From positions 25,482,001 to 25,546,000 of the forward strand of contig NC_043004.1 of NCBI RefSeq assembly GCF_006345805.1: a DNA stretch of 64,000 nt. The letters are read 5' to 3'. Source of the stretch: Octopus sinensis (taxonomy: Eukaryota). The notes under the pieces were generated by a model. That model was not told the DNA's origin. It was given only the letters and a program-made list of their open reading frames with translations, and made no database searches. Made by a program: the position numbers and the translations under genes. Below are positions 2,550 to 42,480 of this stretch, piece by piece. The number at the start of each line of letters is the position of its first letter. Position 1 is the first letter of the stretch.

Positions 2550-2924
2550 GCTGTTTCCTCAATCGAAGGATCACGCTGACGTTTCCTCAGTAACATAACA
2601 GTTTATTTTGTCGGATGATGTTTTTGTTTGACCAACGTTTGATTAAATTGTAAATTGATATTACGGACAGCATTTCTGAATGTGTTAAATTGTTAGGAAC
2701 TCTTCTGTATGTCACCGGTGTGATTCAAAAGAAGTTAAAAATTATCAGTAACACCGTTTACTTCGTGTGTTTGTTGCCAAAATTTGAAACTAGTATTATT
2801 ATAATTATTTATAGTCATTTATTTTAATCATATCATGTAAACGGAGGTCCATAATATCCAAGCCAAAATCTGAATCATAAAACATAGTAACAGACATTTC
2901 TCAGTTTTTAAGAATTCTTCAAGA

Positions 2925-4934
2925 ATGGAAGGCATTAATGAGTTGGACACTTCTAACACAACTGTTTTTAACAATGTAGACGCAATTACACAGACAGTCA
3001 GTGGTGAGAAACTTTTACCTAGTGAAACATTTACTAAACAAACATCAGTAAACAGAAACGTTGCTAAATATCGCTGTGAGGTTTGTAAGAAAACATTCCC
3101 TTCAGAACATGAAATGTTCGCTCACAAAAAAATACATAATAAGGAAAAACCATTCCACTGTGAAATATGCGGGAAATATTTTGTATCTAACAGAAATTTA
3201 ACCAAACACACCAGAATACACACTGGAGAAAAACTGTTTCACTGTGAAATCTGTGGGAAACCTTTCGTTAATAATTCGAATCTTGTTATCCACATACGTA
3301 GTCACACTGGAGAAAAACCGTATAGTTGCGATATATGCGGGAAATCTTTTGTCAATAATAGTAATTTAAAAGGACACAAAAAAATACACACTGGCGAAAA
3401 ACTTTTTCAGTGCGATTTGTGTGCGAAATCTTTCATTGATAATTGGAAACTTATTATCCACAAACGTAGTCACACAGGAGAAAAACCGTTTCACTGTGAA
3501 ATCTGTGGGAAATCTTTCTCTCAGAATTCTCACCTTGTTATCCACATACGTAGCCACACTGGAGAAAAACCCTTCCATTGTGATATTTGTGGTAAATCAA
3601 CGGTCTCTAACAGTAGTTTGGCAAGTCACAAAAGGATACACGCTGGAATAAAGCCATATCGTTGTGAAATATGCGGGAAATCTTTCACCGATAATTTAAA
3701 TCTTGTTATACACAAACGTAGACATACAGGAGAAAAACCGTTTCACTGTGAAATATGTAAGAAATCATTCTCTCAAAATTCTCATCTTGTCATTCATATT
3801 CGTTGTCATACAGGAGAAAAACCTTATCAGTGTGATGTGTGTGGGAAATCTTTGGTGTCTAACAGTAGTTTAATAAATCACAAAAGGACACACAGTGGAG
3901 AGAAACCATTTCGTTGTGAAATGTGTGGCAAGTGTTTCAGTGATAATTTGAATCTTGTTATACACAAACGTAGACATACTGGGGAAAAACCATTTAGTTG
4001 TGAAATGTGCGGGAAATCTTTCATTGAAAGTTCCAAGCTTACAATCCATAAACGAAGACACACAGGAGAAAAACCATATAGTTGTGAAATATGTGGAAAA
4101 TCTTTCGTGAATAAAAGTGATTTAAAAAGTCATGAACGAATCCACAGTGGAGAAAAGCCCTATCACTGTGAAATATGCGAAAAATCATTTTCTGTTAATT
4201 CTAGTCTAGCAGTTCACAGAAGAATCCACAGTGGGGAAAAACCTTATCAGTGTGAAATATGTAGTAAATGCTTTGTCTATAAAAGTAACTTGACAAGACA
4301 CAAACGAATCCACAGTGGAGAAAATCCATTCCATTGTGATATTTGTGGGAAATCTTTTATTGAAAAATTTAAGCTTACAGTCCACAAACGTAGGCACACT
4401 GGAAAACAACCATACTGCTGTGAAATATGTGATGAATCATTTGTGAATAATAGTGATTTAAAAAGCCACGCACGAATCCACACTGGCGAACAACTCTTCC
4501 GCTGTGAAATATGTGGGGAATCATTTCATTTGAATTCTTTACTTGTATTCCACAAACAAAAGAACTGTAAAGAGAAACCTTACCTCAGTGAAAATTACAG
4601 GCAATCTTTTCTTAAAAATGAGGATTTAAAATATCATGAGCAAATACACCCAGAAGAAAAGTGTTATCTTTGTGAAATGTGTGGCAAATCCTTCTCTCGG
4701 AATTCTGATCTATTAAGCCACAAACGTAGGCACACAGGAGAAAAACCTTGTCATTGTGAAATGTGTGAGAAATCTTTTGTTAATAATAGTGATTTAAACA
4801 GGCACAAACGAATCCACAGCGGAGAGAAACCATACAACTGCAAAATCTGTGGTAAATCCTTTATCACTTACACTCTCTTAAAAAGGCACCAACAAATACA
4901 CACAAGAGGGAAATCTTTTAAGTATGAAACATGA
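2925..4934 (+). CDS. Polydactyl C2H2 zinc-finger protein, 669 aa, 48-aa leader plus 22 finger units (units 18-19 degenerate)
   Basis: Uninterrupted ORF with repeated CxxC-x12-HxxxH motifs and TGEKP-type linkers at a 28-aa period. Confidence 0.95.
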   Translation: MEGINELDTSNTTVFNNVDAITQTVSGEKLLPSETFTKQTSVNRNVAKYRCEVCKKTFPSEHEMFAHKKIHNKEKPFHCEICGKYFVSNRNLTKHTRIHTGEKLFHCEICGKPFVNNSNLVIHIRSHTGEKPYSCDICGKSFVNNSNLKGHKKIHTGEKLFQCDLCAKSFIDNWKLIIHKRSHTGEKPFHCEICGKSFSQNSHLVIHIRSHTGEKPFHCDICGKSTVSNSSLASHKRIHAGIKPYRCEICGKSFTDNLNLVIHKRRHTGEKPFHCEICKKSFSQNSHLVIHIRCHTGEKPYQCDVCGKSLVSNSSLINHKRTHSGEKPFRCEMCGKCFSDNLNLVIHKRRHTGEKPFSCEMCGKSFIESSKLTIHKRRHTGEKPYSCEICGKSFVNKSDLKSHERIHSGEKPYHCEICEKSFSVNSSLAVHRRIHSGEKPYQCEICSKCFVYKSNLTRHKRIHSGENPFHCDICGKSFIEKFKLTVHKRRHTGKQPYCCEICDESFVNNSDLKSHARIHTGEQLFRCEICGESFHLNSLLVFHKQKNCKEKPYLSENYRQSFLKNEDLKYHEQIHPEEKCYLCEMCGKSFSRNSDLLSHKRRHTGEKPCHCEMCEKSFVNNSDLNRHKRIHSGEKPYNCKICGKSFITYTLLKRHQQIHTRGKSFKYET

Positions 4935-5560
4935 GAAATCGTTCCTTTGTAAATCTAAATTTATAGTCCATCAATATACCCACATTGGCAAACATTGGTC
5001 ACAGTGAATTATGTCAGAAATCATTGTCTTCAAATTATAATGTTTTTGTGTACACATGTATGCTCTGAAAAACACCCTTTGACTTAAATATTTATGAATT
5101 GTGATCTTCAAAAAGTTGCTAAATGAATAAACACTCGGCATAGAACTATATTAGTTTAGAATATGTGAGGAGTCCTTTAGGAATAAGTAAGTCTACATTT
5201 TTAATCCAGAGTTGAATACAGACTGGAGACAAAAATTATCATTGTGAAATATTTTTAGTCTTGTAATCGACTAATATATCCACAAATACACCCTGAAAGA
5301 AGATCTATTCACTGTTATTTATCATTAAAGTTTCATATTAATCATGACTGGGAAAATAAAGGAGGAAAACTTTACAGATGTAAAATTTGTGGAAAATGAT
5401 TCTCATTCAAAGAACATGTTGTTAAACATAAATACATATAGAGATGGAAAATATTGAGAAGAATTTGTTGGCAACATTCTCTTGAATAGTAAAACCAACT
5501 AATTACTGAGAGATTTGTGTAAAATCTTGTCACTGAAATTTGTGACAAAAGATTTGTTTT
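4935..5560 (+). pseudogene. Decayed zinc-finger relics in the 3' UTR of the + strand ZNF gene
   Basis: A shifted frame from 4933 reads EKSFLCKSKFIVHQYTHIGK. 5361-5430 reads GGKLYRCKICGK*FSFKEHVVKH. Confidence 0.65.
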
Positions 5561-5670
5561 CTTATGGAAATTAAAATCTCATAACTATTTATGAGATTTA
5601 TCCATTTGTTGAATGGAGTATTCTGGAAAAGGGGAATATTTTTTTAACATTAATTACCAGTGAAAACACT

Positions 5671-5676
5671 AATAAA
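5671..5676 (+). promoter_or_regulatory. Candidate polyadenylation signal AATAAA of the + ZNF gene
   Basis: AATAAA in the context CCAGTGAAAACACT(A)AATAAAAT, which is conserved at the equivalent position of the paralog (23471-23476). Other AATAAA hexamers exist upstream. Confidence 0.4.
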
Positions 5677-5678
5677 AT

Positions 5679-5958
5679 CATTATCATCATTCAACGTCCA
5701 TTTTCCATATTGGCATAGATTGGATGATTTAACTGTAGCTGGTAAAGCCCGGAGCTGCTCCAGGCTCCATTGCCTGTTCTGGCATGGATGCTTTTCCTGA
5801 TGCCAACCACTCCATAGAGTTTACCTTGTGCTTTTAATGTGGCACCATCACTGGTATCAATTCTACTGTGAAAGACAGGTCTTAGGTACAGCATTGTGTC
5901 AATTATCTCAGTTGTTAGTCATCTCCTTTGTAAAGCTTAGTACTTGAGATCGGCCTTC
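5679..5958 (-). mobile_element. 5'-truncated RTE-family 3' end (antisense insertion)
   Basis: Degenerate (CAT)n tail plus TTCAACGTCCATTTTCCAT, similar to the tail of the RTE at 10714-13511. AAAAT flanks both sides, and the paralogous flank lacks the insertion. Confidence 0.75.
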
Positions 5959-5961
5959 AAA

Positions 5962-6480
5962 ATATTGCTTCATAATATTGTCTCCATTCATAACTACAAA
6001 CTTAAGGGAAGTGGCTCTTATATCTTGAAACACTGGATGTCAGAACATTTTAGTAGCTTGGTTTTAGTGATAATGGCCATATTGATTCAGGAGAATTCTG
6101 CAGATAGATGGATGTTTTGATATTTTCAGTATTTGCTGATTTATAATAACCTTCATTTGTGGATGCTGGTTGCATAGCAACACAATATTTGTTTATTTGC
6201 TACAGCTATTAAGTTCAACTCTACCAGCACCAATGCCAATTATTGTAAGTAAATATTGCTAAGACTGCAATATGACAGGTAAATACTAGGTTTGAGAGAG
6301 ACTGTCAACTTTAAACCTTTGTAGATGAGAGGTTTCGTTTCTGTTGTAGTTTTGTGAGAAGCTACAAGTAGCTGCTGTACCCATTATAATATCACAGAGT
6401 ATTTAAAATAAGGTTAATCTCAGTTGTAGTTTGGTAAGGAGCTGCTGTAACTGTTTTATTATCATACACAGTATCTCAAG
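5962..6480. repeat. Left copy of the inverted paralogous 3' flank (partner 22885-23470)
   Basis: 5962-6302 versus the reverse complement of 23128-23470 shows about 12 substitutions in about 340 bp. Weaker similarity continues to about 6480/22885. Confidence 0.9.
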
Positions 6481-7229
6481 TACAACCAATTTAGTCACTA
6501 CACTGTATGATATGAGACTTGTTCTGCGTCAATGAAACTGATTGTAAGCAACACCAAGTACTTCTGATACTTCATTATGATGTACCATGAAATGGTTATA
6601 AAAAACACCCATGTATTTATGTTTTCCAATATTTTTCTCCTTATGAACACATTTACTGGAATGATGATGTGGTGGTCTATTGCTGGGATATAAGCAACAG
6701 CCACAAAAAAAATTATTTAAAACCTTAGCCTCACCCTGCATCAAGTGAGTCTATGTGTATGTGTGTAAGAAAAAACTTACAGAAAAGTATACTATTAAAA
6801 TAAATTATCTTTTACATATGTTTGTATTTTTTTAACTCACTCTGTCACCTTACTGAAATTCTTTACACACATGCATACATACATTGACAAACACACACAG
6901 TGTGAGTGATATAATTTTGAAGAGTGGGAGAGTGAAAGAAATAGACAAATGTGAGAGAGAGAGAATGAGATCTTTACTGTCTTTGTCACAGATTTCAAAA
7001 TTTTAAAATTAAGTGTAAGTTTTGAAATTTGGTATATTAATATACTTTTTCAGGATGGATGCGTGTTTTTAATTCATTTATTCCAGAAAAAATTTTTTTT
7101 TTTAATGTTACAGAGGTTAAAGTTTGATCATTTTTACCCAATCAGAAAATAGGATTTTTGTATGTGATAGCTGTGATAAAATGGAAGTAAACATTAGAAG
7201 ATGTTTTAAAGAAAATGAAAGTTATGCTT

Positions 7230-7935
7230 GAGAGTTAATACATACACAAAGAGAGTGAGTGTCAAAGAGTGTACTAAATATAAAGAGATGGCTTGATGGT
7301 GATAGAGAGTGGGGATCTTTTCGGTTTGAGCAGCAGTTTTTTCTAGCGGTGTCATATGAAATTGTCACCCATAATTATGCCCCTAGTATCGATCTATTGC
7401 ATTTCTATCTCTTTTAGGGTTAAGGGTGGGGGAAGGGTATCTTTTTTTCTTCACAAATGTAAATAAACCCAATCTGTTTCTTAAACGAGGGACATATTCA
7501 TACAGCACAATGTTTTTTACCCCAATGGATGTCATTGCAGAAATTGAAGAAAAAAACATCAAATATCTTACAAACTATAGAATTTTCTCAATAAAGCCAA
7601 GAGAAAAAGATGTTTTATAAACACATTCTACCAGTATACGAAGTTTAAAATTTTTTAGTTACCTAGAAATTATGTTAAAAACTGCCGTTCAAACCGAAAA
7701 GATCCGAGAGTGGGAGAGTTGTGGTTCCAAAGTTGAGTTATTTCTCATAGAAAATTGTTTTTTTTTTATTATTATTTACGAACAACATTGTGGGAGAGTT
7801 AATACATACACAGAGTGTCAAAGAGTATAGTAAATATAGAGAGATAGTTTGATGGTGATAGAGAGTGGGAGAGTTGGGGTTCTAGAGTTATTTCTCATAG
7901 AAAATTTTTTTGTTATTTATGAACAACATTGTCTG
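7230..7935. repeat. Diverged tandem duplication (about 160-bp unit), first copy interrupted by a MITE
   Basis: GAGAGTTAATACATACACA...GGTGATAGAGAGTGG[MITE]GAGAGTT...GAACAACATTGT is repeated without the MITE at about 7795-7935. Confidence 0.75.
7313..7705. mobile_element. GGATC-terminated MITE with 8-bp TSD (Merlin-like)
   Basis: TIRs GGATCTTTTCGGTTTGA / TCAAACCGAAAAGATCC. Perfect TSD GAGAGTGG at 7305-7312 and 7706-7713. Confidence 0.9.
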
Positions 7936-10479: not shown

Positions 10480-13400
10480 TTGTTACAGTCATCTGAAATG
10501 GAACTGTCTTTGCTATTCGTCTTTAAAAAAGGACATAAAGCAACTGAAACTGCTCACAATATCAATGAAACGTTTGGTAAGGAAATGGCCAGTGAGTGGT
10601 CTGCTTGAAAATGGTTTAAACAATTTTGTAGTGCAGACCTGAGCCTTGAAGATTGTAAGCATAGTGGATGCTTATCTGTCATCGATGATGGTCAATTAAA
10701 GACCATTGAGAAGTGCCCCTAAGCTGGGGCTACCTGATGGAATGAAAGACTTTTGACAGAATAGAAAGGGGTATAGCATCACATGATGTGGAAGACAACT
10801 GGAGGATTCTACAGGACAACCTGCTGAGAGCTACTGACCAGATCTGTGGAAGACAACTGGAGGCTTCTATGGGAAAACCTGCTGAGGGCCACTGATCAGA
10901 TCTGTGGATGGTGCCAAGTCCCCTCTTGACCCAAGGTAACGTGGTGGTGGAACAATGTTGTTGACAGGGCTATTAGAGGAAAGAAACAGGCTTGGAAGGA
11001 CGGTGGTAGCAGGGAATTGTATCAGACTGCCAGAAGGGAAGCTAGGAGACAGGTTTATTTAGCCAGAGGGGAAGCAGATAAGAAAAAATTTGCCAATGTT
11101 CTGCACCATGGGAACCAAAGACTTGAGGTATTTCGTGTTGCAAGACAGTATGTGAGAGAGAATTGTGATGTCGTGGGAGAGGAATATGTCTGCATGGATT
11201 ATGGTTCACTTGCACTAAATGAGGCTGCAAAGAGACAGGTTTGGAGATGCCACTATGAAAGGTTGCTCAACAAAGAGAATGACTGGGAGAAAGAGAGTCT
11301 GCCAAATGTTGACCCAACAGAGGGACCAATTATCTGAATTGACAGTACCTTGGTAGATAAAGCAATTAAGGGTATGAAGACAGGGAAAGCCCCCAGCCCA
11401 TCAGGAATCACCGCAGAGATGCTCAAAATATCTGGTGGTGTCAGCTATAGCCTAGTTACCCGTATAGTTAACCAGGTGATACTTGAAGGAGTCATACCCA
11501 ATGATTGGTGTAGCAGCATAATAGTCAACTGTTACAAAGATAAAGATGACACTTTAGAGACAAATAATTACAAAGGTATCAAGTTGTTGGATCAGGTAAG
11601 GAAGGTCACGGAGAGGGTCATAGCCCAGCTAATTAGGGAGAGAGTCAATTTAGATGAGATGCAGTTTGGATTTGTGCCAGGGAAAAGCATCACTCATGCT
11701 ATGTTTCTGGTAAGACAGCTGCAGGAGAAATACCTAGCCAAAGATAAACCTCTGTACCTGGCTTTCATTGACATGGAGAAAGCCTTTGACAGGGTCCCCC
11801 AATCCCTTATCTGGTGGTCAATGAAGAAACTAGGGATTGATGAATGGTTAGCGAGAGCTGTGCAAACCATGTACAGGGATGCTGTCAGTATGGTGAGGGT
11901 TGGCAGCAAGTACACTAAAGAATTCAGGTTAGAGGTAGGGGTACACCAATGTTTAGTCCTCACCCCACTCCTATTTATCATAGTCCTCCAGGTAATAACA
12001 GAGGAATTCAAGACAGGATGCCCCTCAGAGCTCCTCTATGCTGATGACCTTGCTCTAATTGCTGAGTCACTATCAGAACTAGATAAGTTTTACATGTGGA
12101 AGCAAGGATTAGAATCAAAGGGCCTTAGAGTCAACCTAACTAAAATCAAATTTCTAATAAGTAGGCAGACAAACCACAAATCCCTTCAGGTAGATGGCCC
12201 TGCTTGATCTGTAGAAAAGGTGTAGATAGGAACTCCATAAGTTGTACCCAGTCTAAGCTATGGACACATAAGAAGTGCAGCAATATCAAAGGAAGGCTAA
12301 CTGGGAAGATAGTTTTGGTATGTGGCAGATGCTCAGGAGCAATAAACACTGAAAATGTACAGAGAACAACTTCTGCCACATTCCAGGGAGAAAAACCAGA
12401 AGTAGTTGATAGCTTCCATTACCTAGGTGACCAAGTCAGTAGCGGGAGTGGGTGCTCTGAAAGTGTAGCTGCTAGAATAAGAATAACTTGGGCAAAGTTC
12501 AGAGAGCTCTTACCTCTACTGGTGACAAAGGGCCTCTCACTCAGAGTAAAAGGTAGAATTTATGACACATGTGTACAAAAAGCCATGCTACATGGCAGTG
12601 AAACATGGGCCATGACTGCTGAGGACATGTGTAAGCTTGCAAGGAATGAGGCCAGTATGCTCTGCTGGATGTGTAATGTCAGTGTGCATACTCATCAGAG
12701 TGTTAGTACCTTGAGAGAAAAGTTGGACCTAAGAAGCATCAGATGTGGTGTGCAAGAGAGACGACTGCACTGGTATGGTAATGTGGTGAGAATGGATGAG
12801 GATAGCTGTGTGAAAAAGTGTCACATCCTAGCAGTTGAGGAAGCACAACCTTAGAACATTAGGCCTCACCGAGGCAATGACTAGTGACTGAGACCTTTGG
12901 AAATATGCAGTGCTTGAGAAGGCCCAGCAAGCCAAGTGAGACCATAACCTGTGGCATATGCCAGTGGTGTAACCAGCCCACTTATGCGTACCTTTCCATC
13001 ATTGGACACTAAACTCTGCTTGCAAAGACCTGTTGAGGCAAGTGAAATTGAAATCAAATTCGATGACAGCTTGACTGGCATCCATGCTAGTGGAATGCTA
13101 AGAGTACCATCCAAGCATGATCATTGCCAGGGCTACTGACTGGCTCCTGTGCCGGTAGCACATAAAAAGCACCATTTGAGCATGAGCATTACCAGTGTCA
13201 CCTTACTGGCACGTGAAAGACAACATGTGAGCGAGGTTGTTGCCAGTGCCACTGGACTGGCTCTTGTGCAGGTGGCACATAAAAAACACCTTTTGAGCAT
13301 GGCTGTTGCCAGTACCGCCTGACTGGCCCTCGTGCTGGTGGCATGTAAAAGCACCCACTACACTCTTGGAGTGGTTGGTGTTAGGAAGGGCATCCAGCTG

Positions 13401-22884: not shown

Positions 22885-23470
22885 AAGAGATAATGTGTAT
22901 GATAATAAAATGACTACATCAGCTGGTTATTGGTCCTCACTAAATTACAACAAAGATGGACCCTTCTTCAGATACGGTGTACAATATAATGGCTACAGCA
23001 GCTGCTTGTAGCATCTCATAAACTACAACAGAAATTAACCTTTCTTCTCTCATCTACCATTGTAATTCACTTACTCTTGTAACTATGGATAATCAGGGAT
23101 TGCTATTTTTATATGGTTTAAAGATAAGTCTCTCTCTCAAACCTAGTATTTACCTGTCATATTGCAGTCTTAGCAATATTTACTTACAATAATTGGCATT
23201 GGTGCTGGTAGAGTTGAACTTATTAGCTGCAGCAAATAAACAAAAATTATGTTGCTATGCAACCAGCATCCACAAATGGAGGTTATTATAAATTAGCAAA
23301 TACTGAAAATATCAAAACATCCATCTATCTGCAGAATTCTACTGAATCAATATGACCACTATCACTAAAACCAAGCTACTAAAATGTTCTGACATCAAGT
23401 GTTTCAAGATATAGGAGCCACTTCCCTTAAGTTTGTAGTTATGAATGGAGACAATATTATGAAACAATAT
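22885..23470. repeat. Right copy of the inverted paralogous 3' flank (partner 5962-6480)
   Basis: The reverse complement aligns to 5962-6480. Confidence 0.9.
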
Positions 23471-23476
23471 TTTATT
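23471..23476 (-). promoter_or_regulatory. Candidate polyadenylation signal AATAAA of the - ZNF gene
   Basis: TTTATT on + in a context conserved with 5671-5676. Confidence 0.4.
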
Positions 23477-23749
23477 TTAGTGTTTTCACTGGTGATTAAT
23501 TTTTAAAAATTGATTCCTCACAGGTAAATAACATAAAATAACATCCAACAAACACTTTCTAGTTATAGAACTTTCATTTTTTGTTACTGTATTTCTGCTG
23601 AAATACACTAACTTAGTTTCAATTAACTTTGAAAATAATGAAGAATTTAGCAAAACGACTGACATTATTAAGCTGGTGTTTGGAACATAAATTAACATGA
23701 AATTTTAATAGAAGGTTTTAATATAGATCTCTTTAAATCAGGAAGTTTG

Positions 23750-24172
23750 GGATCTTTTCGGTTTGAACAGCAGTTTTTAACATAATTTCTAGTTAACTAA
23801 AAAATTTTGAACTTCATATACTGGTAGAATGTGTTTATAAGACATCTTTTTCTCTTGGCTTTATTGAGAAAATTCTATAGTTTGTAAGATATTTGTTGTT
23901 TTCTTTTTCTTCAATTTCTGCAATTTCAACCAATCAATTACGTCCATTGAGGTAAAAAACATTCTGTGCCGTATGAATATGTCCCTTGTTTAAGAAACAG
24001 ATTGGGTTTATTTACATTTGTGAAGAAAAAAATATACCCTTCCCCCCACTCCTAACCCTAACTAACCCTAAAACAGATAGAAATGCAATAGATCGATACA
24101 CGGGTCATAATTATGGGTGACAATTTCATATGACACCACTAGAAAAAACTGCCGTTCAAACCGAAAAGATCC
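23750..24172. mobile_element. GGATC-terminated MITE with 8-bp TSD (same family as 7313-7705, opposite orientation)
   Basis: TIRs GGATCTTTTCGGTTTGAAC / GTTCAAACCGAAAAGATCC. Perfect TSD GAAGTTTG at 23742-23749 and 24173-24180. Confidence 0.9.
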
Positions 24173-24338: not shown

Positions 24339-26432
24339 TTAAGTTTCACAGTTAATAAGATTCCTTCCAATGTGTTTTTGTTTGTGTCTTTTTAAATAAT
24401 CGTTAGAGATAAATGATTTCTCACATAGTTCACAGCGAAATGGCTTTTCTCCAGTGTGACAACGTATATGGATAACAAGATTCGAATTATTCACAAAGGA
24501 TTTCCCACAGATTTCACACTGGAATGGTTTCTCTCCAGTGTGGATTCTTCTGTGTGCTGCTAAATGACCGTTAGTGATAAAAGATTTTCCACACACATCA
24601 CAGTGGAATGGTTTCTCTCCACTGTGGATCATTCTATGTGTTTTTAAGAGTCCATTAGTAATGAATGATTTCCCGCACATTTCACAGTTGAACGGTTTCT
24701 CTCCGCTGTGTGTTCTTTTGTGACTTGTCAAATAACTATTAGACACAAAAGATTTCGCACACACTTCACACTTGAACGGTTTCTCTCCACTGTGGATCCG
24801 TTTGTGACTTGTTAAGTAACTATTATCAACAAAAGATTTCCCGCATATTTCACACTGATAAGGTTTCTCTCCAGTGTGACTACGTTTGTGGATAACAAGA
24901 TGAGAATTATTAATGAAAGATTTCCCACAGATTTCACAGTGGAATGGTTTTTCTCCACTGTGAATTCTTCTATGTCTGTTTAAATCACTATTATTCACAA
25001 AAGATTTCGCACATATTTCACAGCAGTATGGTTGTTCCCCAGTGTGTATACGTTGGTGAACTGTAAGCTTAGAATTAGAGACAAAGGATTCCTCACAAAT
25101 TTCACAGTGGAAAGGTTTTTCTCCAGTATGTCTACGTATATGGATTGTAAGCTTAGAATTCTCAATGAAAGATTTGCCACAGATTTCACAGTGATAGGGT
25201 TTTTCTCCAGTGTGAATTCTCTTGTGAACAATAAGACCAGAATTAACACAGAAGGATTTCCCACAGATTTCACAATGGAATGGTTTTTCTCCAGAGTGTA
25301 TTCTTTTGTGACTTGTTAAATAATTATTATCAACAAAAGATTTCCCACATATTCCACAGTGAAATGGGTTTTTTCCACTGTGTATTTGTTTATGTGTTTT
25401 TAAGAGACCATTAGTGATAAATGATTTCCGACATATTTCACAATGGAAGGGTTTTTCTCCCGTGTGCCTACGCTTGTGGATGACAAGATTCGAATTTTGA
25501 GTGAAAAATTTCCCACATATTTCACAGTGAAACAATTTTTCTCCAGTGTGTACTCTGATGTGTGCCGTTAACTTACTGTTTGTGATAAAAGACTTTCCAC
25601 AGATTTCACAACGACACGGTTTCTCTCCACTGTGGATTCGTTTGTGCCTGTTTAAATCACTTTTATTCACAAAAGATTTCCCACATATTCCACAGTGAAA
25701 TGGGTTTTTTCCACTGTGTATTTGTTTATGTGTTTTTAAGAGACCATTAGTGATAAATGATTTCCGACATATTTCACAATGGAAGGGTTTTTCTCCCGTG
25801 TGCCTACGCTTGTGGATGACAAGATTCGAATTTTGAGTGAAAAATTTCCCACATATTTCACAGTGAAACAATTTTTCTCCAGTGTGTACTCTGATGTGTG
25901 CCGTTAACTTACTGTTTGTGATAAAAGACTTTCCACAGATTTCACAACGACACGGTTTCTCTCCACTGTGGATTCGTTTGTGCCTGTTTAAATCACTTTT
26001 ATTCACAAAAGATTTCCCACACACTTCACACTTGAACGGTTTCTCTCCACTGTGGATCCGTTTGTGACTTGTTAAATTACTCTTAGATACAAAATATTTC
26101 CCACACACATCACACTGATAAGGTTTTTCTCCAGTATGCATTCTTCTGTGACTTATTAAATTGCTGTTATATGCAAAAGACTTGCCACAAGCTTCACAAT
26201 GATACGGCTTTTCCTTATTGTGTATTTCTTTATGACTGAACACTTCATGTTCCGAAGAGAATGTTTTCTTACAAATCTCACAGCAATATTCAGAAATATT
26301 TCTATTTACTGATGTCTTTTCGTTAAATGTTTCACTTGCTAAAGGTTTCTCACCACTGATTGTCTGTGTAATTGAGTCTACATTGTTAAAAACAGTTATG
26401 TTAGAAGTGTCCAACTCACTAATTTCCTCCAT
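24339..26432 (-). CDS. Polydactyl C2H2 zinc-finger protein, 697 aa, 48-aa leader plus 23 fingers; paralog of 2925-4934
   Basis: Uninterrupted ORF. The leader is 35/48 identical to the + paralog, and the first finger and C-terminal ...ET* ending are shared. Confidence 0.95.
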   Translation of the reverse strand: MEEISELDTSNITVFNNVDSITQTISGEKPLASETFNEKTSVNRNISEYCCEICKKTFSSEHEVFSHKEIHNKEKPYHCEACGKSFAYNSNLISHRRMHTGEKPYQCDVCGKYFVSKSNLTSHKRIHSGEKPFKCEVCGKSFVNKSDLNRHKRIHSGEKPCRCEICGKSFITNSKLTAHIRVHTGEKLFHCEICGKFFTQNSNLVIHKRRHTGEKPFHCEICRKSFITNGLLKTHKQIHSGKNPFHCGICGKSFVNKSDLNRHKRIHSGEKPCRCEICGKSFITNSKLTAHIRVHTGEKLFHCEICGKFFTQNSNLVIHKRRHTGEKPFHCEICRKSFITNGLLKTHKQIHSGKNPFHCGICGKSFVDNNYLTSHKRIHSGEKPFHCEICGKSFCVNSGLIVHKRIHTGEKPYHCEICGKSFIENSKLTIHIRRHTGEKPFHCEICEESFVSNSKLTVHQRIHTGEQPYCCEICAKSFVNNSDLNRHRRIHSGEKPFHCEICGKSFINNSHLVIHKRSHTGEKPYQCEICGKSFVDNSYLTSHKRIHSGEKPFKCEVCAKSFVSNSYLTSHKRTHSGEKPFNCEMCGKSFITNGLLKTHRMIHSGEKPFHCDVCGKSFITNGHLAAHRRIHTGEKPFQCEICGKSFVNNSNLVIHIRCHTGEKPFRCELCEKSFISNDYLKRHKQKHIGRNLINCET

Positions 26433-27360
26433 ATTAATTCTTGAAGAATTCTTAGAAACTGAGAAATGTCTGCAACTATAATATATTGTGGTTCAGTTTC
26501 TCGCTTTGGATACCATGGTCCTATGTTTATGCGTGAGGGAAATATATAATGTACTGTTTACTTACCACTAAAATATTTGTTACTAACTGGATCCTCTCCC
26601 AGTGGCACACATACTGTAGGCAAAAACACTTCTATTTCTATGTTAATAAATGCAGATATGGTTAATGTATGTTATACAGGCTAAAACATAGAGAATCCAT
26701 AAATAACTGGTAACCAACTTTCTGGTGGAAACAGTCTTCTATAACAAGTTGTAATGGTTCACTGCTAGCACAGCTGTAAAGTAAGAAAAGATAGAATGGC
26801 ATAAGACTGAGGTTGGGTTAAGAAAATGTGAAGCATGTGTGTGTGTACATATGTATGTGCAAGTGTAATCATAATATATCGGGTTTGTTTACTGTCTATA
26901 GTAGAATGTGTAACAAAGCTGATAACCAAAAGGTTAATATTTAGTTTAACTCCAGGTCACCAAAACAAAAAACATCCAGTCTAATAGGGGTAAGAAAAAA
27001 TGTGTAGAAAATGAATACGAAAATAAAAATTTGCACAAATGAAAGGGTGGATGGGGAGATGGCTTTCGGAAAATTCACACAATCTGATTTTTCCCTCATA
27101 ACTTTCAGGAAAATGGATATCTGTTAATGAAATTCTATAAAAAAAATACCATTCAAATGGCATAGATGATGATTATAAAGAAATCTGTAGGGAAAATCTT
27201 TTCCGAAGGGGTGGGGAGAAGACTGTCAGAAAATTCACATGATCCAATATTTTCCCTAACTCGTAGGATCTAGTTTAGCACCCCAGTCACTAAATAAAAA
27301 AAGTCTAATAGGTGTAAAAAAATGTGTAGAAAACAAATATGAAAACAAAAAATTGCAGGT

Positions 27361-35639: not shown

Positions 35640-36598
35640 CCTTTGGGTGTGTTCTGTCTAGTGGTTGCCGCTATAAAGTTCTTAGCTGTAAATGAGTGGT
35701 CCTTTGTTACTAGCAGAGGTAGGAGCTCTCTGAACTTTGCCCAGGTTATTCTTATTAAAGCAGCTACACTCTCAACCCTGCTACAGACTTGGTTACCTAG
35801 GTAATGGAACTATCAACTACTACTATTTTTTTCCCCTGGCAAGTTATAGAATCTATTTTCTGTACATCTTTGGTGTTTATTGCCCCTGTGCATCTTCCAC
35901 ACACAAAAACTATCTTCCCAAATAATCTTCCTTTGATATTGCAGCACCTCTTATGCGTCCATAGCTTACACTGGGTACATCTTATGGAGTTTCTACCTAT
36001 GCCTTTTCTATAGATTGAGCAGGGCCATCTACCTGAAGGGATTTGTGGTTTGTCTGCCTTTCTACTTACTAAGACTTTGGTTTTTGTTAGATTGACTCTA
36101 AGGCCCTTCGATTCTAGACCTTGCTTTTACACCTGAAACTTCTCTAGTTCTTGTAGTCACTCAGCTATTAGAGTAAAGTCATCAGCAAAGAAGAGCTCCC
36201 AGGGGCATCCTGTCTTAAATTCCTCTGTTATTGCCTGGAAGATTATGATGAAGAAGAGGGAGCTGAGGACTGATCCTTGGTGAACCCCTGATTCTTCACT
36301 GTACTTGTTGCCAACCCTCACCTTACTGATAGTATCCCTATACTGGGCTTGTACAGCTCTCAACAACCACTCATCTATCCCGTTTCCACATTGACCACCA
36401 GATAAGTGATGGAGGACTCTGTCAAAGACTTTCTCCATATCTACGAAAGCCAAGCACTAAGGTTTATTTACATTGTTCCACCACCATGTTACCTTAGGTC
36501 AAGATGGGACTTTGTACCAGCCACAGTTCTGGTCAGTAGCCCCCAACAGGTTGTCCTGTAGGAACCTCCAGTTGTCTTCCACAAAAGCTTCAAGTAGC
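35640..36598 (-). mobile_element. RTE LINE fragment (same family as 10714-13511) with internal deletion
   Basis: AFVDMEKVFDRV, GVHQGSVLSSLFF and LFFADDF on the minus strand. Nucleotide similarity to 10790-12500. Confidence 0.85.
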
Positions 36599-36715: not shown

Positions 36716-38084
36716 TATATATGTACCGGTGTAAGTACCGGATACATTTCAAAAAAGTGTTGTTTTTTTTTTATACATACAGATGTGTGCGTGACTCTGT
36801 ATGTCTGCACCACCCCGTTTGACAACCGGTGTGTTTACGTCCCCGTAATCTAGCTGTTCGGCAAATTAATAGAATAGAATAAGTTACCAGGCTTAAAAAA
36901 AAAACTGGGTTCGATTCATTAGACAAATTCTTCCAGAAACCAAAAGAAAAAGGAATATCTAAACACAAATATATTTGTGCGTGTGAGTTATGTACTCCTG
37001 TGTATAGACGTTAAATGATAATGGTATCGTCGACAACCACAGACGTGTGTAAATATGTAAAATTGTATGGAAATAAATAATAAATTTCTAAGTCTATTGG
37101 CAAGAAATGTATTAACAACGAGGAAGAAACCTATGTCCAAAACAGAGCAAAAAGCTCATTCACCTCTTTGTATTTCTAAGACTGGAATGCCCTCAATTAT
37201 CAATACTATTAGTTCAATGAACATTGTGTTGTCGCACCTGCAAATGATCAACAAGTTCGACACTGAATTATAATTTCCTGATATATATATATATATATAT
37301 ATATAGATATAGAAAGGTATATATATATATAATGATTGCAGCCTTATCACTTAAAGATCATTAAATATTGTAATAATTCAAATATAAAAACGATTTTAAA
37401 CACTGAAAATGTCATTGATGCGTTTGTGTTAGATATATTAAGAATACTTACTTGATATGATTCCATAAGGTGTGAATAAACTGAATTTAGATGGGGCAGT
37501 TTCTGAAATTCATTTATATTTAATGACGTTTATACAGAAATATCTAACGTCAGCAAAAATAATTTGTCCAATGAAATATAGTTGGCAAAGAAGTAATTAA
37601 ATGACTTGTTCCACACACAGCATTAGGGGTTAGCTAGTGGCTCACAGTTTCGTATTCATTTGCACGGCAATATAAATATTTAAAAAACAATCAGAAGGAA
37701 AATAATAGAGGAGAGTGAAAAAGAAAAAGTGACTCGAAGAGATAAACTAGTGACAAGGTTAGGGACCAGGTGGTAATGTGGTTCCACGGAAGGAGCAAAG
37801 AAGGGAGGAGGAGTGGCATGTGCATATATAGATGTATACGGATGGACAAGAGAATATATCGATGTACACAGATGTATAGAAGTGTGTGTATGTGGTATTT
37901 TTGTGGGTTTATATATTTTGAGGTGTGCAAGTGAGGGTAGTGGGTAAGTGTAATCGTATTGAGAGTGGTGAAAGCATGGAAGTAAAGGGGTGGTGGCGGG
38001 AGTGTGTGGCTAAAGAGAACGCAAGAGGAACATGGAGAGTGTGGTAGAAGGTGTGGGGGATGTTTTCGCTTTGATTGGCAGATT

Positions 38085-38268
38085 TTTAAAATAATTTCTT
38101 TGTAACTAAACACTTTTAAACTTCGTATACTGGTAGAATGTGTTTATAAAACATCTTTTACTCTTGACTTTCTTGAGAAAATTCTGTAGATTGTAAGCTA
38201 TTTGTTGTTTAATTTCTTGCATTTCGGCAATTTCAACCAATCAATGACGTCTATTGAGGTGAATACAA
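38085..38268 (+). mobile_element. Isolated arm of the GGATC MITE family
   Basis: CTAAACACTTT.AAACTTCG.ATACTGGTAGAATGTGT...TTCAACCAATCAATGACGT shared with 1470-1640 and 23790-23950. Confidence 0.75.
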
Positions 38269-38269
38269 T

Positions 38270-41090
38270 TTCTCCGGATCTTTGTCAACAACAATTATAG
38301 CAGGAGAGCCTTGCGATACTCCATAAACCATGTACCCAACTTCGATCTTTGATAGAACCAGGATCCGTCCACTGAAACTAGGGAACTTGGGAAACATCCG
38401 TTTCCCCAGCGGAGACCACACCCGTTCACCTTCAAGGTAGAGCCACAGATACCTCAACCTCAGCGCATATCTGCACATCAACAACCAAGGCATCCCTAGC
38501 TCACCCTTTAACGGTTGTTGGCAGCAAGTAGAGCATTTCACAAGCGGTTTCGAGCCCTACCACAAAAAGAGGAAGAGCTGTCTTTCCAGCTTGTTCAACC
38601 ACGAATCAGGGCAAGGAATGACAGTTAGGCGGTAGGTGATGACCGATGCAATGAACACATTGGCTACCTCCGCCTTCCCTTTCAGGGTTAGCCACCACCA
38701 AGACCAGGCTTTGACTATGTGGGTCACCCTGCTTGATACCTCAGCCCAGTTCTTCTCTATTTGGAGGTCTGGTCCAAATCAAACTCCTAGCAACTTAATC
38801 GGACCCTCCGTCCAACATCCCACGACGCTGTCAGGAGGCATCGACTTGCCTCTCCAGGTGCCGACTGACTTTTCACGATTAACTTTTGCTCCTGCCACCA
38901 TCTCGTAAACCTTAATGGCCTTGCCTACCCTCTGTAGGTAATCCATTTTGGTTACGATGATGGTGATGTCATCCGCATAAGCTGAAACCGACTTTCCACA
39001 ACCTGGCTGTCTCGGGATGCCGCTCAGTTTTCACAGTAATGGCTCAAGAGCCATTACATACAATACCGGGGAGAGCAGACACCCTTGACGAACCAAGCAT
39101 TAGATGTTGAACAGCCTTGATAAGAAGCCGTTCACCTGAACTACCGAGTCACTGTTGTCATAAATCTGAATGATCCACCTGAGGAAGCCAAGACCCAGGC
39201 CGAACTGTGCCAGAACGGACACCAGGTAGTGATGGTCAACCCTATCAAATGCCTTTGATTGGTCTAAATGGACCAGTGCCCCACCCTTGCCAGAATCACT
39301 ATTAAACCCCTTTAAAGTGTACTGCATAAGATGGAGATTATCCTGGATGGTTCTGCCGGGAACGGCACATGTCTGTGCCTCCCCGATCAGACCATCCGCG
39401 ACACAAGTCAATCTTTTCGATAACACTTTGGCCAAAATCTTCAACTCTGCATTTAGCAGAGTGATGGGCTGAAAATTACGGAATCCCCCTTGTCCGGCTC
39501 CTTTCTGACAAGCATTACCACTCCCCGGTGCACAGATCTGGGAATAAACCCGTTCTGCTGCCAGTTCACATAGACATTCACCAGCAGGTGCTTGAACAAG
39601 TCTGGCATACTCTTATACTACTCATAGGGTAGACCATCCAGTCACGGCGCCCTACCCGCACCGCAGACTGCCATAATCTCAATTACTTCCTTGGGCCTGA
39701 TCGGCCCTTCACAGCACTCCACATCCAGCCCCGATAGGCGTGGCAGCCCAGCGAGGAAGTCCGTTAGGTCCCCCCTGCTATCCGGTCTGCTGCCCCCACC
39801 GAAAAGCTGGGCAAAGTGCTCCTGAAAAGCTTCACACATCTCCTTGGGCTCGTCTATCAACTTACCTTGCTGGTTCATCAAAGATAGGATTGTGGCATCA
39901 TTACCACATTGGGCTTCCACCACTTGGGCCCATCCTGTGCCTTGATTCCCTCACAACCCACTGCCCTGACAATGCAACCCATGTTTTTGGTTTCACGGTG
40001 CTGGTTTAATGCCAGTCTCTTCACCTGAGCCGCAGAATCAGTTTTCATTGCTTCCTCTAAATCCTTAACTAAAGCTGATTCCCTCCTAGCCTCTCTAGCC
40101 ACTAAATCTATGCTATATCTAATAGACTCAAATTTTATGGCTCGCTTGAGGGCATACCACCATTTATTATTAATAATGGAACCAGTTAATGCCCTCTGAA
40201 TCAACATCTTAATCTGGTCTCTGTACTCCTTAATTGCCAAAAGGGACGTATTAAGTTTCCAGTAGCCAGAGCCTCTATTATATATCTTATCTATGTCAAG
40301 CTTACAGGTGACCATTTTATGATCACTGTAGCTGACCGGGTGAAACTGTGGACACCTAGCTATCTTTCTATCTGCTTTTCTAATTAACACTCTAGGTATA
40401 ACCTGGAAGATCCATCGCTATTTGACCATGTCAACAATGGAGCGTTCAGAAATTCCAACCTATAAGGATCTGCTAGCTCAAACCTGCTTAGCAGTTCCAG
40501 GAAGCCATGACTACCTTTTCTGTCTGTACACGAGCCAACATAATCTACGCGTGCTTCGCAACTAAGGAATGTGATGTACCAAGAAACTTCTCCAGATTCC
40601 GAAAATACTTGCTTTGCCCAGTTGGCGTGGGTGTATAAATTGCAACCAGTCTGATAACTTTACCACGACTGAACGTCAAGTCCATGATGACCAACCTACC
40701 TTCAGGATCTGAAAAAATTAACTTTTTCTCAGAAACCCAGTTTCTTTTTAACAGGACCAACACCCCATTCCCGCTGGAAGGACTGCTTGGAGAGAAAAAA
40801 CTCTCATAGCCATCCAACAGCGGGAGCAGATCTCTTGGCCTCCTTGACCGGGTTTCTGTAGCAACAATAACATCCAAATTACGCGACCTGATGTCATTAA
40901 GGAAGCAACCTTGCTTCCAGCTTGACTTCAGGTCACGCACATTTATACAACCTACATGAATGCTTAACATTGTTTACCTCTACATCAGTGGTTCGAAGTT
41001 CCTTCGTTCTCGCTTTCTTTCTCCTTTTCCCGGGCTCGTGGCATATTTGGACGTAGGCCCTCGTAAATATATGGAGAAAAATCCATTCTG
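38270..41090 (-). mobile_element. Tx1/L1-clade LINE ORF2 (APE + RT), decayed, truncated at both ends
   Basis: CINVRDL..IVATET, YSDHKMV, YWKLNTSLL, PITLLNAELKILAKVLSKRL, LDQSKAFDRVDH and AYADDI across frameshifted ORFs. Confidence 0.9.
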
Positions 41091-42214: not shown

Positions 42215-42480
42215 GGATCTTTACCTTTTGACTGACAGACTTAAAAAATAATTTTTTGTAACTAAACACTTTCAAATTTCGGACACTGATAGAATGTATC
42301 ATATAAAACATCCTTTACTTTTAGCAGTTTTGAGAAAAACTTATATTTACGAAGTTATTTCACGTTAAAGTTGTCCTATTTCAGTAATTTCAACCAATCA
42401 ATGACGTGTATTCAGCTGAATAAAATTACTGCTGTTGTTTGTCAACAAGAACTTCTGGCGGTGTATATTTCATTTGTCAC
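42215..42480 (+). mobile_element. Left arm of the long-TIR GGATC MITE, cut by an RTE
   Basis: GGATCTTTACCTTTTGAC... is collinear with 1447-1712. Confidence 0.8.

Follow-up and report, generated by a model that had tools for sequence, protein, structure and literature searches.

A non-coding block of about 340 bp, lying downstream of two inverted C2H2 zinc-finger (ZNF) genes of Octopus sinensis, is more similar between the two gene copies than the paralogous sequence that surrounds it. The heterogeneity is significant, and the feature is real and statistically solid. Judged from the paralog alignments, the block is most likely a gene-conversion island and less likely a constrained element. Under the reading we favour, to which we give about an even chance, the island is bounded by a SINE on one side and a 54-bp indel on the other, and would be a product of concerted evolution within an old inverted duplication.

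Both genes are called in the assembly (GCA_006345805.1, CM016866.1, ∼25.48 to 25.52 Mb), which was analyzed here as a stretch of 64,000 nucleotides, hereafter the window. ZNF-A (positions 2925 to 4934, + strand) is a C2H2 zinc-finger open reading frame (ORF) of 669 amino acids with 20 recognisable fingers, and ZNF-B (24339 to 26432, − strand) is a paralogous C2H2 ORF of 697 amino acids with 23 fingers. The assignments come from the ORF list and the Pfam models zf-C2H2 and zf-H2C2_2, supplemented for ZNF-B by the paralog alignment. The genes are convergent (tail-to-tail), with ∼19 kb of debris from LINEs and SINEs between their 3' ends. Fragments of LINE reverse-transcriptase ORFs (Pfam RVT_1, E=2e-23) were recorded at 11350 to 12854 (+) and 35693 to 36467 (−), with a second copy 81% identical elsewhere in the window. 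Immediately before both ATGs, ∼45 bp (2880 to 2924 and 26433 to 26480) are highly conserved and include the acceptor-like sequence TTTCTCAG. The frame in this interval is open through to the ATG, and the sole indel (6 nt in B) preserves it. Thus, the coding exon may begin before the annotated ATG and be spliced to an unseen 5' exon.

By alignment, the block sits inside an old inverted duplication of a C2H2-ZNF gene together with its 3' flank. Collinear homology between the two copies runs from A ∼2838 to 5046 (B 26529 to 24306) and is then lost completely; A 5047 to 5629 and B 24305 to 23521 are no more similar to each other than shuffled sequence. Homology resumes at A 5630 (B 23520) and stops at A 6477 (B 22887). 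As yardsticks of divergence we chose the N-terminal 78 codons, the 87 bp upstream of the ATG, and the right flank of the block. The N-terminal codons gave a dS of ∼0.39 and a dN of ∼0.12, and the 87-bp upstream segment is 83% identical between the genes. The right flank (A 6318 to 6477, + strand; B 22887 to 23060, − strand, located by self-BLAST and global alignment) is ∼80% identical. It consists of two diverged tandem units of ∼70 to 80 bp each (6340 to 6464 and 22890 to 23040; TCTGTTGTAGTTT..GCTGCTGTA..ATTAT), which, because they occur in both flanks, would be older than the duplication. Between this flank and the block, 54 bp (23061 to 23114, − strand) are present in B and absent from A, beginning 16 nt beyond the right edge of the high-identity tract.

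Finger order is scrambled between ZNF-A and ZNF-B. Past finger 1, the best-matching pairs are not collinear (e.g., A3 with B17 at 89% and A10 with B3 at 86%), so that array-wide identity (∼70%) is no clock for the age of the duplication; a previous use of this figure as a yardstick does not hold. The scrambled arrays, the dS of ∼0.39, and flanks of only 70 to 83% identity are all signs of an old split between A and B. Within ZNF-B, at 25333 to 26021 (−), a four-finger unit of 336 bp is perfectly duplicated in tandem, with 353 consecutive positions identical at a 336-nt offset; this is either an artefact of the assembly or the outcome of unequal exchange in the very recent past. Decayed zinc-finger-like remnants lie at 5091 to 5451 (+), after the stop codon of ZNF-A and before the conserved tract. 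They read, e.g., GDKNYHCEIF and GGKLYRCKICGK*FSFKEHVVKH, have no counterpart in B, and suggest array contraction or partial insertion. At the corresponding place behind ZNF-B, a 423-bp transposable element (TE) of an abundant family is inserted (23750 to 24172, − strand). It is 88% identical to 7313 to 7705 and 87 to 90% identical to several copies in L003, an O. sinensis locus on another chromosome. Copies of this family at 87 to 90% identity were also noted at 1447 to 1712, 1791 to 2021, 38058 to 38294, and 42215 to 42480 of the window and at 4661 to 6026 and 20158 to 20492 of L003. The copy at 7313 to 7705 lies ∼840 bp past the A module, in the same gene-relative orientation as the copy behind ZNF-B.

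Copy A of the high-identity block occupies 5959 to 6301 (+), as delimited by self-BLAST, alignments, and the segment test described below. In copy B, the alignments place the high-identity tract at 23131 to 23493 (−), where it is uninterrupted: an AATAAA-bearing 25-mer is followed directly by the block. The two blocks are inverted and 16,797 nt apart. Self-BLAST matched 5959 to 6317 with the reverse complement of 23115 to 23473 at 95.3% over 359 nt (17 mismatches, no indels), while global alignment of 5959 to 6302 with copy B gave 13 mismatches in 344 nt (96.2%). The earlier note had counted by eye ∼12 substitutions (∼96% identity) across 5962 to 6302, and its figures stand up well. Its ∼32 differences (∼86%) over the first 228 coding bases are exactly 32 mismatches (86.0%) in global alignment, and the adjoining flank is more diverged, as it had reported (79.8% identity ungapped and 70% counting gaps over 6318 to 6490).

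The mismatch rate of the block differs from that of N-terminal coding sequence (Fisher P = 2.4e-5) and from that of the right flank (P = 5.5e-7). Against all other alignable paralogous sites (110 mismatches in 595, compared with 17 in 359 for the block), the Fisher P value is 1.4e-10. A Sawyer-type maximal-segment test isolated A 5656 to 6301, SINE excluded, with 12 mismatches in 363 sites; its score was reached in 0 of 10,000 permutations (P ≤ 1e-4). Identity is therefore clearly not uniform across the duplication; uniform identity was one of the two outcomes that the earlier note had named as refuting its observation. In terms of distance, the pairwise K of the block is ∼0.035 to 0.049, as against a flank K of ∼0.2, a dS of 0.39, and 24% in a single lineage for the adjacent SINE. 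The left edge coincides with the boundary between the SINE and its target-site duplication (5958/5959), and the right edge falls at 6301, 16 nt from the 54-bp indel. Within these edges the mismatches are clustered, with 12 in 5964 to 6209 and none in 6210 to 6301; the longest perfect runs shared by the copies are 92 (these last positions), 49, and 46 bp.

The edge on the left is formed by a SINE of 280 bp (5679 to 5958, − strand), identified by family alignment and by its target-site duplication and present in copy A only. Its (ATC)n end abuts AATAAA, the insertion having entered two bases past that hexamer. The target-site duplication, AAAAT, occupies 5674 to 5678 and 5959 to 5963, and copy B retains the uninterrupted empty site. 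Thus, the description of the block as starting directly after AATAAA is right for copy B, while in copy A the hexamer lies 283 nt upstream with the SINE in between. SINEs are the dominant repeats of octopus genomes (PMC9068888). The insertion matches copies of its family both within the window and at loci of O. sinensis and O. bimaculoides (nhmmer, E=1.6e-46). Like other members of this octopus SINE family, it aligns to the 13 copies sampled from two Octopus species, has an (ATC)n end, and is flanked by a 5-bp duplication, but it is among the oldest copies sampled and carries a 13-bp deletion, with a distal half that is barely alignable. It differs by 24.0% from a consensus of the 13 other copies, drawn from the window and from fetched O. 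sinensis and O. bimaculoides loci, which themselves range from 3.4 to 25.3%. Three estimates, made against three window copies, a provisional family consensus, and the 13-copy consensus, place its divergence at 21 to 24%. Against the provisional consensus, only 6 of 35 mismatches are of the CpG-decay type.

Wedged between AATAAA and the block, the SINE serves as a built-in local neutral clock. Its presence in A and absence from B indicate that it inserted after the two segment copies separated. With 24% divergence as against ∼20% per lineage from dS, insertion and duplication would date to about the same time, and both probably predate the 34-My split from O. bimaculoides. Since the insertion, neither copy of the block has changed by more than ∼2.4%.

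This clock bears on the possibility that the duplication is young (∼4 to 5% divergence), such that the block shows its true age and everything else has been overwritten by conversion from other paralogs or by positive selection. The scrambled finger arrays are clearly exchanging segments, and donors do exist, as the N-terminal and 5' regions are common to other family members. However, a 24%-diverged SINE that sits in A and is cleanly missing from B cannot date within the last ∼2% of divergence. In addition, identity is only ∼80% in the right flank, which is non-coding and for which no paralogous donors are known, and the stretches from stop codon to tract are unrelated between A and B. The age of the SINE largely refutes a young duplication, and we consider this explanation very unlikely. 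By the same reasoning, an old SINE confined to A excludes a single event that converted the entire tract ahead of the SINE insertion. Any conversion would have been confined to the right of the SINE and been either repeated or late. The earlier proposal that the block is either a constrained element or a conversion tract survives in its either/or form, while the 24%-diverged SINE contradicts a recent conversion that covered the entire tract.

Homology does not begin at 5962, where the tract had been taken to start, but continues for 23 nt on the left of the SINE, including AATAAA and 15 nt upstream of it. This segment (ACCAGTGAAAACACTAATAAAAT; A 5656 to 5678, + strand, with AATAAA at 5671 to 5676) aligns to B 23493 to 23469, with AATAAA at 23476 to 23471, without a single substitution and with one 2-nt indel. 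Under neutral divergence, the chance of no substitution at 23 sites is ∼1e-5. With unalignable DNA on its left and a 280-bp SINE on its right, the 23-mer is too short and too isolated to be converted on its own; purifying selection is the consequence that we draw. On the paralog comparison, the isolated 23-mer must be under such selection, as for this piece only selection fits. Because its AATAAA lies at a UTR-like distance from both stop codons (747 nt in A and ∼430 nt in B, TE not counted), the 23-mer is probably the poly(A) signal of both genes together with its upstream context. Octopus 3' UTRs have a median length of 350 to 380 nt, which is unusually long for invertebrates (PMC9699675).

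Under the gene-conversion reading, non-allelic exchange between the inverted copies, 16.8 kb apart, would keep homogenising one interval. The segment from the SINE to the indel would be the only uninterrupted homology still long enough for strand invasion, with the SINE to its left and the indel to its right acting as heterology barriers that produce the sharp tract edges. The identical last 92 bp would represent the most recent small conversion event, and the 23-nt piece left of the SINE would persist through selection on the poly(A) signal rather than through conversion. The block itself would require no function. Several observations fit this proposal. Edges at the SINE and its target-site duplication and near the 54-bp indel are what heterology-limited conversion predicts, although constraint is compatible with them as well. 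The clustering of mismatches fits nested short tracts. The perfect 336-bp tandem duplication in ZNF-B and the scrambled finger order point to a recombinationally active locus. The block shows no sign of function in the form of an ORF, an Rfam family, or a robust RNA structure. Also in favour of conversion, a more distantly related member of the family lacks the block in the 7.6 kb downstream of it.

Sharply bounded islands of high identity between old linked paralogs, as in the primate gamma-globin genes, are a classic signature of gene conversion. As with HBG1/HBG2 and palindrome arms, a near-identical island lies in old duplicates between diverged paralogous flanks and ends at sequence discontinuities, and the octopus copies, 16.8 kb apart, are inverted and in close linkage. 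The octopus island differs in being short (∼340 bp), wholly non-coding, and downstream of the genes; moreover, conversion tracts as a class are defined by discordance with the species tree, while this block is known from the paralog pair of one species. Homogenisation driven by conversion has also been proposed for octopus protocadherin arrays (PMC9068888).

Three considerations weigh against conversion. The island is short (338 bp) and yet would need repeated events, while 230 bp of N-terminal coding sequence and 160 bp of right flank escaped. Repeated events with variable end points should blur the edges, and both edges are sharp. Finally, given selection on the adjoining 23-mer, a single continuous constrained element is the more economical account of the left side. 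If conversion is nonetheless the explanation, the locus is an ordinary but clean case, from a ZNF cluster of a cephalopod, of concerted evolution bounded by heterology. Paralog identity in such clusters would then be a mosaic and unusable as a clock.

The main competing explanation treats the 23-mer and the block as a single functional element, non-coding but part of the ZNF transcription unit, that purifying selection keeps in both paralogs; we give it a serious but clearly lesser probability. On this account, the same force that must act on the unconvertible 23-mer, which has no substitutions left of the SINE, would act on the adjoining sequence. The rates agree, with at most 2.4% per lineage in the block compared with 24% in the adjacent SINE and ∼20% per lineage at synonymous sites, although for the block conversion would produce this pattern as well. 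Constraint would also accommodate the sharpness of both edges, the 340 bp without indels, the non-uniform mismatches (0 in 115 end positions and 12 in 246 middle ones), and an island that is short for sustained ectopic exchange. Against these points, a more than 10-fold slowdown over 340 contiguous non-coding bases is of ultraconserved-element level. Non-coding elements of this length that evolve more than 10 times slower than neutral DNA would be rare beside fast-evolving ZNF paralogs. The block would also be slower than the non-synonymous sites of the genes themselves (dN of 0.12), which is unexpected for rapidly diversifying, lineage-specific ZNF paralogs. Furthermore, the supposed element has tolerated a 280-bp SINE within it, the sequence from stop codon to element is wholly unrelated between A and B, and the block is absent from a related family member.

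In its most concrete form, constraint would act on an alternative 3'-UTR extension from the proximal AATAAA (A 5671, B 23476) to a distal AGTAAA (A 6248, B 23184). The candidate distal poly(A) site comprises a CA cleavage site ∼20 nt downstream and the GU-rich sequence GGTTTGAGAGAGA, which ends exactly at the edge of conservation. The perfect last 92 bp hold the AGTAAA, the CA, and the GU-rich run and so resemble a distal poly(A) site, and the distances from stop codon to AATAAA in A and, without the TE, in B fit octopus 3' UTRs (PMC9699675). Alternatively, the element might be a non-coding exon or act at the DNA level as a regulatory element. Candidate exon signals are the acceptor-like ..ACCAG|TG at 5660 and the donor-like ATT|GTAAGT at 6245 and CAG|GTAAAT at 6279. 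The AGTAAA and the splice-like motifs are identical in the A and B copies, but all of the cited motifs are short, common at 33% GC, and picked post hoc.

Like conserved non-coding elements and 3'-UTR extensions, the tract is non-coding and free of indels, evolves far more slowly than adjacent neutral DNA, and lies at the 3' end of a gene beside AATAAA. It differs in that its conservation is unusually high for a fast-evolving ZNF family and that a SINE splits one copy; in addition, the class is defined by conservation between orthologs, whereas the octopus tract is known from paralog comparison alone. That the 23-mer and the 340-bp block constitute a constrained element of ultraconserved grade at the 3' end of octopus ZNF genes that are lineage-specific is, on balance, somewhat unlikely. 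Were it so, a regulatory 3'-UTR extension or a non-coding exon would be a possible role, and one arm of a maintained 343-bp double-stranded RNA (dsRNA) a less likely one. Expansion of the C2H2 family is one of the signature expansions of coleoid genomes. Constraint would mean that fast-diversifying octopus ZNF genes carry an almost invariant 3' non-coding module, and it would suggest that members of this expanded family are controlled in common, post-transcriptionally or at the level of chromatin.

Searches for coding or structured RNA content gave little. The block contains no ORF longer than 58 amino acids in copy A or 42 amino acids in copy B, in line with the initial description of it as ORF-free, and database look-up of the small ORFs overlapping the module found no entry on record. 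Metagenome, viral, and prokaryotic collections, which contain no cephalopod genomes, yielded no exact match to a 27-mer taken from the perfectly conserved part. Rfam gave no hit at the gathering threshold in the window and none at E ≤ 1 in either block copy. Compared with shuffled controls, folding of the block gave z scores of −0.18 (A sense), −2.20 (B sense), and +0.40 (antisense), and a local G-U-rich hairpin in the sense strand at 6030 to 6130 reached only −1.6 and −2.1. A structured RNA or miRNA precursor is therefore unsupported, there being no Rfam match and no folding energy clearly below that of shuffled sequence in both copies. The suggestion that the block is an RNA element fares poorly on these results (z of −0.2, −2.2, and +0.4), and the RNA-structure and Rfam searches likewise lend no support to constraint.

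The inverted arrangement raises another possibility, namely that the pair is maintained as a long dsRNA, an ADAR substrate, in a read-through or host transcript. The two segments of the + strand are predicted to pair over 343 of 359 positions (−567 kcal/mol), with the three longest runs of identity forming perfect helices of 92, 49, and 46 bp, and A-to-I editing in coleoids is widespread and directed at repeats (PMC9068888). The 343-bp ADAR duplex envisaged in the earlier note is, by this computation, physically possible. It would, however, require one RNA of at least 17.5 kb that crosses two convergent genes and their poly(A) signals. In the A and B mRNAs the block has the same sense, which leaves these two unable to form a duplex with one another, and selection on pairing explains the 23-mer and the sharp edges no better than the other models do. 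Inverted Alu pairs in human 3' UTRs similarly consist of two inverted copies with long, near-perfect complementarity. By comparison, the octopus copies are 16.8 kb apart, lie past the poly(A) signals of convergent genes, and form a two-copy segment rather than a dispersed element, the octopus pair being known here from sequence alone. We hold maintenance as dsRNA to be a remote prospect.

An origin of the block as a TE or dispersed repeat, inserted independently behind both genes, has nothing in its favour beyond the abundance of TEs in this region generally. Collinear paralogous sequence borders the block on either side, and two independent insertions would not yield a 96% core with an 80% flank attached. 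Repeat and tandem-repeat scans, including TRF, of the block and the whole module found no terminal inverted repeats (TIRs), target-site duplication, or tail, in agreement with the absence of TE hallmarks noted at the outset. The A/B pair is the only occurrence of the block in 71 kb (the window plus 7 kb upstream), and no further copy was found in five other O. sinensis and O. bimaculoides loci (L003 to L007; ∼141 kb), for a sample of ∼210 kb of octopus DNA in all, which is small relative to the genome. Given the collinear embedding, the missing hallmarks, and the lack of any other copy in this sample, TE identity was rejected; we assign it next to no probability. The dispersed young TE that the earlier note had named as the other refuting outcome was accordingly not found, neither as another copy in the ∼210 kb nor as a TIR or target-site duplication.

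Finally, ZNF-A and ZNF-B share a non-finger N-terminus of ∼48 amino acids (2925 to 3070 and 26287 to 26432), ME..N.LD.S...VFN.VD..TQT..GEK...E.FT, which has no Pfam match. A profile of the first 134 amino acids found this N-terminus in O. bimaculoides A0A0L8GTW0 and XP_014789413.1 and in an O. sinensis "ZNF 239-like" protein, which places the two genes in a small cephalopod ZNF subfamily. A full-length ZNF-A protein search returned generic vertebrate ZNFs and no octopus relatives among the 120 matches listed. A 76-amino-acid N-terminal query found no candidates, and the clustered protein collection lacks both ORFs. Two more distant paralogs are found in L003, with ∼71% nucleotide identity in the N-terminal region. 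The 7.6 kb downstream of the first of these were the interval in which the block was sought and not found; thus, the block is not common to the subfamily as a whole. Two further O. sinensis loci, L004 and L005 (CM016885.1, 10.05 Mb and 10.41 Mb), lie 356 kb apart and encode the same 135-amino-acid ZNF product. They share the same gene span and a near-identical layout of neighbouring genes (offset by ∼9 bp downstream), and either a large segment was recently duplicated or the assembly contains one segment twice.
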